Assembly: GCA_009103225.1 (NCBI GenBank)
Contig: RHPI01003642.1
Location: forward strand, 641,116 to 705,115
Length of the DNA stretch: 64,000 bases
Source of the DNA: Chlorokybus atmophyticus
Taxonomy: Eukaryota; Plantae; Mesostigma and Chlorokybus algae
Direction: 5' to 3'
This document shows positions 19,000 to 29,353 of this stretch, one piece after another. The notes beneath the pieces are model-generated. The model ran no database searches, was not told the origin of the DNA, and saw only the letters and a program-made list of their open reading frames with translations. The position numbers and the translations under genes were made by a program. How positions within the stretch are numbered: position 1 is the stretch's first letter; each line of letters opens with the position of its first letter.

Positions 19000-21900
19000 C
19001 TACAGCAGTGCAGCCAATGGCTCTGCGGCCGAGATGTCAACCAACTCCTTCACTTCCGCATTGCAAAAAAAACAGCGCTGGTTATTCAGCAGATGGCGTG
19101 AGATGCAACGCCGGCAGGATGTGTGCCCACATGGCTCAAACTTGGTGTCTTCATCATTGGCATAGCAGATGCTGCACAGCTCGCGTGTACGAGTCTCTTT
19201 GCCCTTGCTCGAGGCTGCTGCCTCCTCAGCTGCTTTTGCCGCTCTGCGTACTTGTTCTGTGCGGTCGCGCAGCCTTGCAACAAACGTCTGCAGCTCTCCA
19301 AGAGATGCCTGGATTGTTTGATCTTCAGGAAAGGCCTCAATCTGCGGCAAAGCCCGGTCAAACCAATGCGCATGTACCAAGTAGCAAAGCTGCAATTACG
19401 AAAATTACATACCCAGTTAAAACTGAGCAAATACTCAAAGTTTGCCATCGAGTATGAGGACTCGATGGCAGCAAGCGAATCCAGGATTGAGCGTTTGCCA
19501 GGTTTCTCCCCCGACACCTCAGCAGCTTGCAGGTTCAGGAGGATGCCCGCAATAGGTGCCAGCACGTGTGCTCGATTGATCTTTTCCAACTGCTGCATCT
19601 GTAGCCTCAGAGTGCTGCGGACAATCAACAGCCATGAGCTCGGTGCACACACAGCTTTTTTCAATGCATGGCAATCAGCAGGATGACGCACTGCAACGAT
19701 ATAGACTACAGACCATGTGGTGTCATGACTTTACCTGTCAAAAAGACGGGCATCTGGACCCGACGTGGTGTGGTTGAGGACAAACACCAGAAGCTCGCAC
19801 AAGCGCGTAGCATTCAACTCTGGGCCATCTAGGAAAGCTTGAGGCAGCTCTTTGGTAAAGAACTCCAGTATCCGCTCCAAGTTGACACTTAATTCAAACA
19901 TGATTGTGCATTTGCGCTGCTGTTGTTGTAGGTCTGGAGCCTATAGCAAAACAGTCCAGGTCATCACTCAATAACACATTGTGTGTGGCTCAAAGTGAGC
20001 AGCGCAAGTTAGGTGCACAGGCGACGGCTCCACATGGCAAACATGCTGCATACCTGACGTCGGTGAACAGCATCTTGCATTTCCTTCATTGTGACAGAGA
20101 ATTCGGTAATCGTCCAATTCAACGTGTTGAACAACCGGTTAAGGAACGCAGAGAAGAGTTTATCTTCAGCAGAGCAAGATTGAGACAACAGACGTTGAAA
20201 GACAGCTGATGCACACTCGGCGCCTTTCCGCGATCGCTGCCCAAACCCGCTTCCTTTGCAGAGACGTAGAAAAATGTTTGCAACAGGTATCCAAAAGCGG
20301 GAGTCGAATGACATCATAAGAGAGGGTATCATCGACTTCTGCGCAGCCTCGTTCTTCTCAAAGGCAGTCACATACTCTTTGTACTGCAGCAGCACAGAAA
20401 TCGACTGCCAAGCGAGATGAACATTGTCAGATACCCATGCGCGAGACTAGACAGCTGCGTGGCCGCAAACCTTGACTAACCAACGACTGTACCTGCAGAA
20501 GCACATCACGAATGTCGGGGTTGACAATGCGAGCGTCGTTGAAGTGCGTGACAAGGAATGTCACAATGCTGTCCAGTCCCTGATCCATGGTTGATGTCGG
20601 TTCAAAGGGCGGATCACCGCGGCGGAGGGCATGAAAAGACTCAACAAGCGTCTCAACATAGAATTCTGGGACGTAGCTGAAGAGGCGGTTTCGCTTGCTT
20701 GCCGCAAGTAACAACTGTACAATGAACCCGCAGCAAGCGTACATCCCTTGTTGCTTCCAGCGTCCAAAGAGGGTCACTCGGTACCATGCACACATTCGCA
20801 CGTTCTCAATGACGTCTTCGCGAAAGACAGCTCTGGCTTCTTTGAGATGTCGCACCATGTCACAACCGGGTTCACTGCGCTTGATGCGACGATCTGTGTC
20901 CTCCAACTGCGCAATGGCCTGCAGAGCACAACCGCATCATACCAAGACGTGACAGGTGCAATAACCCAACGACATGTGATAACAGCTCAAAACTCACCTG
21001 CATCTGTTGTTGCAAGTGCCCAGATGCTTGTTTGAAATTGGACGACAGCCCCAACTGGTAAAGCAAGGTCATGCAGTCGAGCAGCTCTGCTTTGCGCAAG
21101 TTTGAAGCTGCATCCAAGACACCACTAGCAGTTGCAGAAACTCCACGAATGTCATCTTCGTTGTTAAGACCCCAGCGCGAGTCATCACTTGATGACGTGC
21201 TTGCAATATTCGCATGACCCTCCACAACGACGTCCTCATAATCAGCAGGCTCTGCTGGTAAAGTCTTGCGCAGGTGGCTCACTGTTCCACCCAAGCGAGC
21301 AACATCGAAGGCCTCCATCGACTGGTCCAAAAATAGCCTCGAAGGAAAATAATGAGGCTCTGAACTTGCGAGATAGGGCGTAAGCACCCTTAGCACAACG
21401 AAGTACAAGGACACCAAGACAGAGTTATCTGACAAGCCCGGCGGCTGCACATTCCGGTTGACGCCCCTATTCTTTGCAAGGATGTGCCGGCAAAACTTCT
21501 GAAAGACTGAGCCTTGTTTATCGCCAGAAACGGATGCTGAACGCTGAGCAACTGGAGTATACGTCATGAGTCTGGAGCATAGCCTGAGTTGTAGCTGCTC
21601 ATTCTTGCCAACAGCTGCAGCCAGCGCTTGACAACTAGCCTTCATTTTGGTTTGCGAGCAGATCTCGTCTGTAGCCTCTGGCCACCATACTGAAGGCAAG
21701 AGTGCAGCCAGATCCTGGGAGTTGGGTTGCTTTCTGGTCAAAAGGCCTTCCAGCAAGACCATAAACTTGGGATGCGAAAGCCAGGTGTCTAGTATAACTT
21801 CTGAACGCATCAGGCTGCATGCCAGCGACAGATAGGGGTATGCCCCACTATGGGGGAAGTCAGCAGCATTGTAGAAGGCGGTGCAACATTTGTGCGCAAG

Positions 21901-24163
21901 CACCTCAAACAACTGTGGCACAATCTGCTGAAGTTCATGGTGTTCCAAACACAGCACCAGCAACTGGACAGCCTTGTCCAACCGGGTCTCATCATGTGGA
22001 TCGGATCGACGGAGCGTGTCCAGCAAAAAGGGCAACAGGTTGGATGACACAATGTAAGGGTTTAGAAGCGGCTGGAGATACTCCAGGATGGCTGCAGCAA
22101 ACAAGACCTGCAGACGCACATGTTTGCTGGTATCTACAGACAAAGTGCGCGCACACAACCAACAAAATTGTAACGTGACCACAAGTGACCTACACAGTCT
22201 GCATGTTCACCTCATCATCAGAAGCAAATGAAGGACCCATTCGTAGCGTCTCCCCAGAGGCAAAGCCATCTTCGTTGCTCTGCACTTGAACAAGCCTTTG
22301 GAAGCAAGTCAACAGGTGATCTGCCTGACTCAACGTCAATGGTGATGGGGGATCCTGAAGCGGTAGGAATCCTTCAACTGGGTAGTCCAAAGGCCTTCCT
22401 CCAAAATTAAGATGACATCGCTCTCCGTGAGACAGACTGACAGCTGGGAAGTAGGCAGCACCCGGCAACAATCCGCGAACCTTATTAAACGCTACACCCA
22501 GTGAAACACCATTCCGGTAAAATGTGATCTCACCAGCTGACAAGTCCAAGCAGCAACCAATGACGTCACCAGGCACCCAGGCTTGGCCATATGGATGGCA
22601 GCTGACGTGCCATTTCTTTACGCGCTTTCCATCGTAAGCGAACGAGTCAGGAGCATCTCCCACTCCCTCTTCATTGGTGAACGGACACCTCAATGTGGCC
22701 CAGCCGAGCTGTTGAATGCCAGCTGTGCCAAGAGTAACCTCAAACATCCATTTGCCCTTGAAGACACAGACATTTGCACGCGCACTGCTAAAGTTGCTTT
22801 GGCTTTCTAGTGTCAGGTCGCCATCCTCAAATTTAATGTCCCCTGATGCCGTTTCTCGCAACATTCGCGCAACCTTTGGACCGAGACGGCCAGTGGCTGA
22901 ATAGCCATTAAGCTGGTCAGGTTGGGGCGCTGTAGTACTGGGTTGTGAAAACTGTTCGGCTGCAGCACCCTCAATACCTGTAACGCCATTCTGACATCAG
23001 AAAAGCAAGTGGAGGCTCTGCTACAAACATACTCCCTCGCACGCGTATTGCTACGTGATGTCCCAATAAGGCCGTACTGCAGTATAGCCAGTACAACACT
23101 AGGGCCTTCATGGGAAATCACAGATGAACGACAGCTTGTGCTCCGGCAATTGCTACGATCAAGGACAACAGACATGGACGAGGACAACATGAGGGATGAC
23201 TGGCATCCATACCGCGTGGCTGACGGACCAACATGCAGCAAGGACACTATGTTGGCAGTGAGGCACTAAAGCATGCAGCATGCAATGCGCAGCAGTGTGT
23301 GCTGATTGCTGTGCATCGCACACACAATCAACAAAGCAACACATAGCAGCTTGTGCGCATAACACGGCAACGTGGACAATCCACCTGCCAACGCCAATCA
23401 CACGCTTGTGCTAGCACGCATCATGGCCAAGTAACCCAGCATGATGGGTATGACAACTTTGGGAAACGTCTAGTGGTGATTATGCCGTTTCTAGAATGTG
23501 AAACCACCTTTGTATACCCTACTGGCTCACATGGTCATGCAAACTACTAGCCGGTTAAGTTCACGAAATACTCCATATGTGCGTAGTGATCAATCAACCC
23601 TACAGATGACGTTTCGGACAACACTGACATGCGCGGTACGCATCTAGCCCACAAGCTGTCACAAGGCCACCTGCAAGCTCTCACTGCTTGCAGACTTGCA
23701 TGTAAACATAGGAGACTCGACAACGACATGACTGTAATCAGTTAATGAACAATCTAGCACACGGCCTGATAAAAGGCAGGATGTAGAATGCGCGGAAGAG
23801 AGGCAAGGCTACTTAGCGTGTGTTACCTTCCATAGGAGTACTTGATTCAGCGGTGTCTGCGTTGTCTATTTGAGCAACCTGGCTACTGCTGGTAGCCTCA
23901 TCTGCTAACGCAGCAAGCCGGGCCTCCAGCGTCGCCTGCACCGCTGCGATATTGACACGACCATCCTCCACAAACTCGCTCTTCTCCACACCGAGAACAT
24001 GGCGGACATGCTTATTGAGCTCCATGGCTGGATCCTTGATCTCCTGCATATGGATGCTGGTGGTGTCGTCCGCAAGCAGCAGGGCCAGCCCGGCGCTGGC
24101 TTTATCCTCCTTGCCCTCAACACCGGCCGACCCGACACGCGCTGGCTCTGCCTCCCTGGGCAT
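19000..24163 (-). CDS. RKP: E3 ubiquitin ligase RKP (KPC1/RNF123 family; SPRY domain + C-terminal RING), multi-exon
   Basis: N-terminal SAGLALLL, SPRY exon (FSSARANVCVFKGKWMFEVTLGTAGIQQLGWAT..GDAPDSFAYDGKRVKKW..YFPAVSLSHGERCHLNFG), central YVPEFYVETLV and FDSRFWIPV, RING CSICYANDEDTKFEPCGHTSCRRCISRHLLNNQRCFFC. Confidence 0.93.
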
Positions 24164-24789
24164 CGTCACCCAACCCCACGGAGCCCTTGCCTGCCGCGCC
24201 GTCGTCGCACCTAGCAATCCAGCTTTACAGTGATCAGGCGCAGATCCTTCTCCACAGTCTCAGGTGCTTGCTGCTTCAACTCCAACTCAACGCACAATTG
24301 CCACAATCACAAACAGCCACCTACACTATGGACCCTCAACCACCTCGCTACTAACTCCAGCTCAATCCAAGACACCCACGGCACAGACCACCTCGCCGCC
24401 GCCTCCACCGCCTTCCAGAAGGCGCCACTCTCTGTGACAAGTACGTCAGCACGCGACTGACACCTTCAACCGGCTAATTTACAAGCGCCAGACGAGTAAC
24501 ACCCAAACGCCGGAGCAGCTAGATAGCCCTCAACGCCGAGCCAGGGACAACGCCTCTCCAACCACACCTCACCGCCACCGCCGTCGCCACCGCCACCGCC
24601 ACCGCCAACACCTATTGACCCCTACTTGCCAACATCCGATATGCTAGCGACGCACGCCTTGTGTGCCAAGTCGGATTGTGATTAATGGCCGCAGTGTTTC
24701 AAGTGACTGAAGTGACTGAAAACTTCTCAGTAGCCGGAGATTCAAACTATGAGCCCTGTCCACTTGGCGGCATCATGTGCGCTGCGGCC

Positions 24790-26149
24790 ATGGAGCGGCG
24801 GCGGCGACGGCGGCGGAGGGAGGAGCTGGGGGCGGGGGAGGGGGCGGAGGGAGGGGAGAGGGGAGGAGGTCACGAGGACGAAGAAGAGGAGCCGGGAGCT
24901 GGGCGACGTGAGCGGCGTAAGAGGGGAGAGAAAAGAGGGGAGGTGGGACAGAGGGATGAGGGGCAAGCAGCCCGCAAACGGACGGGGCCAGCGGTAGTGA
25001 GGGGTCCCTCCTCGCCGTCTGCTGTTGTTGAGCATGATGGCGGACAGCATGCTTGTACACCGGGAAGCCTCGCCAAGCGTGAGCAAGCGAGGCTTAGCAG
25101 CCTGTTGCGCGGCATGGAGCCAGCTAGTGCTGGCAGAGCCAAAGGCATGTCCAAGCTGGAGAGCATGCAGCCGCAGCTGTTGCCTGCAGAACCCTCACAG
25201 CCTGCTTCTGCGGGCCACAGGAAGAAACTCAAGCGACTGAAGCAGCAACGGCAAGCGGAAGTTCAGGATAGACTACTGCCACCCAAGCCACGCAATGCTG
25301 CTGCCAACAGTAAGCACACACCTTAACGCGGTCGCATGGCCACTTGTGGTACTGTATTTTTCAGTCACGGCTATGCCTGCACCAGCTTGTGGTTTCCTTC
25401 CACCGGTCGTTGGTTGCTTAAGCGTTGCAGTTGTGCGTTGCTATGCTTGTAGATGCATGCTGTTTGTGCTGGCTGATTGAGGTACCAATTCAAATGTCTG
25501 TTGCAGCATTTGCAGAGATTGCAGATGCAGTCGATGCGGCAGCTGATGCGATGGTCATGAAGTTGGGGCGACGCGAGCGAGCTGCGGTCGAAGAAAAAAT
25601 CGGCCACTTTGCAGCCGACATGCGTGCACAGCTGTCTGAGTATGAGGACGCCCTAGTAGAGAGACAGCAACTTGATCGTGAGATTCGTCAGGTAATGGTT
25701 AGCACCTTTGTTTAGGCTTGTGCGTTTAGGATTTCATTTACATGACTTGGGCGTTGCAGGCCAAGCGGTTAATGAAGGAAGCGCGAGCCACACTGCTCAC
25801 ACTGCGGCGTGAGCAGCTGCAGATAGCGGATGAAATGGAGGCTGTTCAAATTGACTACAAAGAAGGTGAAGTCCGGCGCAAGCAGTTGGAGGATGCGCAT
25901 GGGTTCTTGACAGCATTGGAGTCTGCTCAGCCTGTTCAGAGCACAGATGCCCGTGGTCCTCAAGCAACAGCACAACTCCCACCTGAAAGTGCAGAGCAGA
26001 CAGTGCACAATGTAGCTGCCATGCTTGCGGCTGTCACATCACGCTGCCACAACGTCTCTGAGTTACATGCACTGAATGAGGACCTGCAGCAGTCCTTAAG
26101 CAGTTTACTGGCTTGGAAGTCCGCACAAGGTGGCTGTGGGGTGACGTAA
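24790..26149 (+). CDS. Coiled-coil protein resembling kinetochore CCAN subunit CENP-U/Ame1; 3 exons (24790, or 24685, to 25309; 25507-25691; 25760-26149)
   Basis: Splice phases join cleanly. A disordered, charged N-terminus is followed by IGHFAADMRAQL..LDREIRQAKRLMKEARATLLTLRREQLQIADEMEAVQIDYKEGEVRRKQLEDAHGFLTAL..VAAML..LHALNEDLQQSL, which aligns without gaps by eye to the CENP-U C-terminal domain as I remember it. Gene existence is well supported; identity is inferred. Confidence 0.6.
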
Positions 26150-26563
26150 CTGGGAGTGGGTTTAGGTAGAGTTCGACAGCTGTCATAGCAATGCCTTGTC
26201 GCTCAGCACACATTGCTGTGGTTGTGACAGCTGCATGGTGGTTTCAGTGTGCCAGCAATGTGGAGTGTTGCATACAATGTGGCGCATGTATGCGCATGCA
26301 AAGAAACATACAAGTGTTGGCAACGTACAGCATGGTTCTGTTGGATGTGTGCACTAAAGTCCACGCCAATCTGGAGTCAAATGTGCCTTCGATGACTTGA
26401 AAACTGCTTGCAAAGTGGCATGGAGTCAGTATCACTGGTTGCTATACACACAGTAACAACTTGTATTCTTGCATCAACTACAGGCAAACATGGCAGGCAG
26501 TAAGTCCCATAGCTGTGTTAACAATGCACGCATGCGAGCGTACAATAGCGATCCGCATGTTAA

Positions 26564-29353
<2,790 letters not shown>

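Follow-up and report, generated by a model that had tools for sequence, protein, structure and literature searches.

CENP-U, the protein called Ame1 in budding yeast and Mis17 in fission yeast, is a subunit of the CENP-OPQU/COMA complex of the CCAN. Described members of the family include human CENP-U (MLF1IP/PBIP1; chain U of PDB 7pb8, 7qoo, 7r5s and 7xho), Ame1 of Saccharomyces cerevisiae (chain U of PDB 6qld, 6qle and 8ovw) and Mis17 of S. pombe, and the family is also present in early-diverging fungi such as Mortierella, Dissophora, Gigaspora and Paraglomus. Yeast Ame1 is essential, and its extreme N-terminus binds the Mis12 complex (reviewed in PMC9252888).

The kinetochore-enriched CCAN is described as lost from land plants. 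According to a 2017 survey, all Archaeplastida lack the CCAN, and its CENP-U set comprised only animals, the choanoflagellate Salpingoeca, fungi, Thecamonas and Acanthamoeba (van Hooff et al., PMC5579357). For Arabidopsis and moss, only CENP-C, -O, -S and -X are listed, with CENP-C the only one of them at kinetochores, and none of CENP-U, -Q and -P is listed for land plants (PMC12526889, PMC6433463). An earlier note on the DNA analysed here had stated that land plants are generally reported to keep only a reduced CCAN. The sole CENP-OPQU/COMA member so far listed for land plants, CENP-O (AT5G10710 in Arabidopsis), is an RWD protein and thus a different subunit from CENP-U. In the literature library that we searched, no paper apart from the 2017 survey connects CCAN subunits with Chlorokybus, Mesostigma or Klebsormidium. 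Here we describe a gene of Chlorokybus, an early-branching streptophyte alga, that is very probably an orthologue of the CENP-U family. It lies in a 64,000-nucleotide stretch of genomic DNA (the window), whose coordinates are used throughout, and is an unreported member of a known family whose Pfam CENPU match is already carried by the database.

Gene structure and transcripts

The features of the gene are as follows.

24790..25309, + strand: exon 1, from translation; transcript contigs span 24855-25309
25310..25506, + strand: intron 1, 197 nt, GTAAGC...TTGCAG; two contigs, one per run, leave it out exactly
25507..25691, + strand: exon 2, from translation; corresponds to residues 67-127 of Chrsp33S05156
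25692..25759, + strand: intron 2, 68 nt, GTAATG...TTGCAG; skipped in contigs from both runs
25760..26149, + strand: exon 3, from translation, TAA stop included
26150..26208, + strand: 3' UTR, ending at the site of poly(A) addition, where an X2 contig stops
25605..26089, + strand: Pfam CENPU (PF20994) match, given as its genomic span with intron 2 inside

Transcript evidence came from the contigs of two public Chlorokybus runs that belong to independent studies (X1, 2013; X2, 2021). In contigs of both runs, 25309 is followed directly by 25507, and 25691 by 25760; the borders are GT..AG, mismatches are absent, and the joint across intron 2 is given in the contig placement as 25688/25757 with a 'cut +3'. 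Both introns of the spliced gene proposed in the earlier note are thus matched exactly in two studies. One X2 contig carries 25 A residues after 26208 that are without counterpart in the genome, a poly(A) run that fixes the gene on the + strand. The Chlorokybus CENP-U gene thus gives rise to a spliced and polyadenylated transcript.

A word search with the exon-1 frame retrieved the corresponding model of the JGI Chlorokybus (Chlat1) gene set, Chrsp33S05156 (P0001), a protein of 256 aa. It covers exons 2 and 3 in full, preceded by the split codon and the final 65 codons of exon 1. The searches reported below used this model or single exons; the first 108 residues of the longer, 364-aa model entered them only within the exon-1 piece.

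The two models differ in their start. An in-frame stop at 24679 sets the upstream limit of the reading frame, which is open from 24682 on; candidate in-frame ATGs lie at 24685, 24775, 24790 and 25114. The earlier note had chosen the ATG at 24790, which has a GCCATGG context and yields the 364-aa model; a start at this position is unproven. The JGI model begins at the internal Met at 25114. Contigs of the gene extend back to 24855, and the contig that overlaps the upstream neighbour stops at 24566, which confines the transcript start to 24567-24855. Across 24790-25113, contigs and open frame run at least 259 nt upstream of the JGI start, and the JGI annotation therefore probably cuts the N-terminal tail short, by up to 108-143 residues.

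Assignment to the CENP-U family

In a Pfam search of Chrsp33S05156, CENPU (PF20994) was the first match, with 30.3 bits against a curated cut-off of 27.8, a small margin of 2.5 bits, and an E value of 4.1e-7. The match pairs residues 99-237 with profile positions 68-198 of 200, and no other Pfam family came near this score. Exon 3 searched alone against Pfam gave CENPU at E 0.0028 (17.8 bits; profile positions 97-199 of 200). The profile comparison proposed in the earlier note thus passes the gathering score with PF20994; PF13097, the vertebrate family that the note had named, gave no match in the Pfam search of Chrsp33S05156.

Relatives were sought with phmmer among 1.84 billion representative proteins, with residues 66-256 of Chrsp33S05156 (191 aa) as the query and E values up to 0.001. 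The nine matches were the protein itself, a YadA-like repeat protein of Klebsiella that matches in short stretches only (nine of them, the best spanning query residues 129-171), an unnamed metagenome protein, and six proteins of Mucoromycota and Glomeromycota (Mortierella, Actinomortierella, Dissophora, Funneliformis, Gigaspora and Paraglomus; E 4.7e-6 to 6.6e-4). CENPU is the sole Pfam match in all six fungal proteins and lies above the cut-off in four; one of the six is named an AME1-domain protein by UniRef. The motif ..YQER..ARRRGAGTHQ..FRGF occurs near the N-terminus of four of them (P0003, P0007, P0008 and P0009) and also in the curated Mortierella CENP-U of the 2017 data set (van Hooff et al., PMC5579357), which marks them as bona fide CENP-U. 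In this check through reciprocal relatives, fungal CENPU-family proteins make up six of the eight non-self matches.

The metagenome protein P0006 (JGI/IMG, 205 aa, from a 1.5-kb contig) matches the algal domain over query residues 40-168 at E 8e-5. It is without a Pfam CENPU match, shows a weak match to DUF2009 only, and may be the CENP-U of an uncultured eukaryote nearer to the alga than the fungi are.

The C-terminal domains of the early-diverging fungal proteins align with the algal domain over about 165-190 residues at 23-28% identity. They share its helix order, and in them too the domain comes after a long, disordered N-terminal region; they differ in having an insertion ahead of the last helix and are mostly longer (359-737 aa). 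The alignment holds 18 invariant columns, which fall in the elements L.E..D, LR..LL, E..R..LE..H.FL..LE..V and L...N..L, and VTSRC is common to the alga and most of the fungal sequences. Shared motifs such as AHGFLT and VTSRC stand outside plain heptad repeats.

With hhalign, Chrsp33S05156 and the fungal-only alignment matched with a probability of 98% and E 3e-13 over 163 columns (28% identity), and the match is wider than that of Pfam, covering residues 60-227, or 25291-26059 in the window. An HMM built from the fungal sequences only scored 74.5 bits on the algal domain and -0.6 on the reversed sequence; its highest scores were 9.0 bits in 500 shuffles and 10.0 bits in 500 shuffles that kept the heptad register. 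A reader of the protein might suspect a generic coiled coil that resembles CENP-U by chance or composition, since it consists mostly of long helices, its pairwise E value to human CENP-U is poor and fold searches with it are non-specific. Against this, composition- and heptad-preserving shuffles reach at most 10 bits where the real domain reaches 74.5, so that coiled-coil composition does not explain the match. Moreover, the matches drawn from 1.84 billion proteins are almost all of the CENPU family and not the far commoner myosins or SMCs, and the motifs common with the fungi, VTSRC and H.FLT, sit on the side of the loop. We consider a chance resemblance hardly credible.

Membership in a related helical family was weighed in the same way. 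In an ESM Atlas feature search, the AME1/CENPU cluster came first (score 0.93, 214 shared features), and clusters of CENP-Q ranked lower, at 0.79-0.81. Together with the topology that Mis12/NANO-type families have in common (PMC6601020), the presence of CENP-Q in this list could be taken to suggest a CENP-Q/Okp1, a Dsn1-like or an Nsl1-like protein in place of CENP-U. Such an identity is very unlikely: neither CENP-Q/Okp1 (PF13094) nor MIS13 gave a Pfam match to Chrsp33S05156 at E values up to 10, every significant relative with a Pfam assignment is CENPU, and cross-matches between these families are unexpected, as Tromer et al. saw no sequence similarity of CenpU to other subunits.

All named relatives are fungal, with Mucoromycota the nearest, as they would also be if the gene belonged to a contaminating fungus or had recently been acquired from one. 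The identity, however, is only 23-28%, as expected of an ancient divergence, and the gene sits inside a 64-kb algal window, is matched without mismatch by Chlorokybus transcript contigs from two studies and is part of the JGI Chlorokybus gene set. With this level of identity and independent transcript evidence, contamination or transfer was rejected, and we give it practically no chance of being correct.

Word searches, with the single sequence and with a profile, and phmmer over the 1.84 billion proteins found no relative in other green algae or plants. Of the word-index searches, the one with Chrsp33S05156 alone retrieved only the protein itself, and the one with the alignment retrieved itself and Glomeromycota. 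The missing green relatives bound the sensitivity of these searches and do not prove absence.

The earlier note had compared the algal protein with stretches of human CENP-U. These prove accurate when compared with the PDB chain and the van Hooff data set, and the human anchors I..F, R, E, Q..Y.E, R..L..A..FL..L and L...N..L are in register with the alga; HMMER aligns about 50 residues, up to the FL..L anchor, in the identical register, with a pairwise E of 0.73 that is not significant alone. In the phmmer search of Chrsp33S05156 against PDB that gave this value, CENP-U ranked second, among chance matches, and exon 3 alone found nothing in PDB with the same program. The profile placed human CENP-U at the top of the PDB sequences, at E 0.12, again not significant alone. 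No direct sequence match to S. cerevisiae Ame1 was obtained, although Ame1, like S. pombe Mis17, belongs to the same Pfam family as the alga. The significance of the assignment, as far as sequence comparison goes, stems from the profiles and the early-diverging fungal relatives, and not from the pairwise match to the human protein.

By these comparisons, the C-terminal ~190 residues of the predicted algal protein belong to the CENPU family. The homology to CENP-U/Ame1 claimed in the earlier note is upheld by PF20994, the fungal relatives, hhalign and the shuffle controls, and neither a yield of generic coiled-coil matches nor a better match to another family was seen in phmmer, Pfam or the shuffles.

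Domain architecture and modelled structure

The domain is divided between two exons. Exon 2 encodes the first ('head') helix and the start of a long helix, and carries the I..F and L.E..D anchors; exon 3 encodes the remainder of the long helix (LR..LL, E..R..LE..H.FLT.LE), a loop, and the C-terminal helices with VTSRC and L...N..L. An AlphaFold model of exons 2 and 3 places helices at domain residues 2-24, 28-124, 144-163 and 167-192. The first is the head helix; the second, some 97 residues long, keeps pLDDT values above 90; the last two, C-terminal, come after the loop. The C-terminal coiled coil described in the earlier note finds its counterpart in this long modelled helix. As modelled, the protein has the architecture of the CENP-U family, in which a long disordered N-terminal tail leads into a head helix, followed by the long coiled-coil helix and the helices at the C-terminus, and human CENP-U has this same architecture.

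Searches by fold gave little discrimination. Foldseek against PDB ranked Ame1/CENP-U chains 1, 2, 6, 7, 10 and 24 (6qld, 8ovw, 8ow1, 6nuw, 7xho and 6qle), with S. cerevisiae Ame1 in the top rows; all of these have E values above 1, and nothing was found at E below 1. With VIA-align, Ame1/CENP-U chains reached Z 7.0-7.9, level with designed bundles and with ClpB and Vipp1; the values for Ame1 itself (Z 7.5-7.9 at an rmsd of about 9 A) are within noise. A shape search of the ESM Atlas with the algal model returned generic matches only. Fold searches thus fail to separate Ame1/CENP-U from generic long-helix proteins and are uninformative for a lone long helix.

If the algal protein is built and works as its homologues do, the head helix and the ~97-residue helix would pair in parallel with CENP-Q/Okp1, and the C-terminal helices would pack on the RWD domains of CENP-O/P and on the rest of the CCAN, as seen in solved complexes of yeast and human. 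The disordered, charged tail, which carries a basic patch immediately ahead of the domain, might then project outward as a docking or regulatory arm.

The N-terminal tail

From 24790, exon 1 comprises 173 codons, among them 39 for K+R, 25 for D+E and 23 for G, and only 22 for large hydrophobic residues. The tail that it encodes is charged, rich in Gly, Arg and Glu and predicted to be disordered, and ends with the basic patch HRKKLKRLKQQRQ, which is followed by the first residues of the conserved domain. AlphaFold modelled exon 1 without structure except for one helix, with low model confidence, and exon 1 had no match when searched against Pfam. Both the composition and the unstructured model agree with the long, charged, disordered N-terminus that had been read from the letters at the outset.

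The full-length fungal proteins among the relatives described above start with ..YQER..ARRRGAGTHQ..FRGF, sometimes twice, and the alga is without this motif. For the exon-1 frame from 24685, an HMM of 11 fungal copies gave -4.3 bits, a score also attained by 456 of 500 shuffles. A run of Arg followed by GAG at the putative algal N-terminus was considered as an Ame1-type motif and set aside, since it reflects low-complexity GGN DNA and obtains no score. With no motif of the fungal Ame1 type in the algal tail, a yeast-style role for it as linker to the Mis12 complex is not supported by sequence comparison. The motif is not universal: to our knowledge, no linker role toward Mis12 is described for CENP-U of vertebrates.

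Proposed kinetochore function and evolution in the plant lineage

It is likely that the gene encodes the Chlorokybus orthologue of CENP-U, working as a CENP-OPQU/COMA subunit of the inner kinetochore; for the function taken alone our confidence is lower. Homology alone is no guarantee of function, because CENP-O in moss and Arabidopsis is off kinetochores. The algal protein might likewise be a true descendant of CENP-U that is no longer at the kinetochore, a relic with another role or none, like land-plant CENP-O. The precedents for such a fate are CENP-O, -S and -X of moss and Arabidopsis, which show no kinetochore enrichment (PMC6433463, PMC12526889), and the missing N-terminal Mis12-binding motif and the failure of our searches to find green relatives would fit it as well. 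On the other hand, the whole C-terminal domain is kept, including the positions invariant in fungi (74.5 bits with the fungal HMM), and the gene is expressed, and we regard loss of the kinetochore role as unlikely, though it deserves to be kept in mind.

A COMA subunit retained as a kinetochore component is therefore the reading that we carry forward. The proposal of the earlier note that such a subunit was retained in Chlorokybus before the plant kinetochore was simplified is reasonable, homology being its basis. A well-supported, expressed CENP-U in an early-branching streptophyte makes the family older and wider than the 2017 set showed, brackets in time when the plant kinetochore was simplified, and offers in Chlorokybus an organism of the plant lineage in which a CCAN could be studied.

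It is tempting to go further and suppose that Chlorokybus keeps a working CENP-OPQU/COMA module within a near-complete CCAN, a tentative proposal toward which the balance of our judgement does not quite tip. If it is true, this would be the first CENP-U outside Amorphea (animals, fungi, apusomonads and amoebozoans), and loss of the module in the plant line would be dated to after the branching of Chlorokybus and Mesostigma. The tail lacks the Mis12-binding motif, so on the same supposition linking to the outer kinetochore in the manner of yeast would not have been a task of CENP-U in its ancestral form.

Neighbouring sequence

The gene apparently stands head to head with its upstream neighbour, whose 4.3-kb transcript contig is the one that stops at 24566. 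The gap between the contigs of the two genes, 24567-24854, is shorter than 290 nt, holds a (CCGCCA)n-like microsatellite at 24567-24617 that was flagged as a repeat when the contigs were placed, and could be a shared bidirectional promoter. Further upstream, ORFs on the minus strand at 22190-22864 and 20872-22182 show a strong match to SPRY (Pfam E 2e-32) and a weak, HEAT-repeat-like one; both may be exons of one large neighbouring gene. On the other side, a further transcript on the + strand (26376-26683) starts about 170 nt past the poly(A) site of the CENP-U gene and, through a joint at 26683, passes out of the stretch. A minus-strand ORF at 27365-27925 weakly matches a protein kinase domain at the C-terminal end of that domain.
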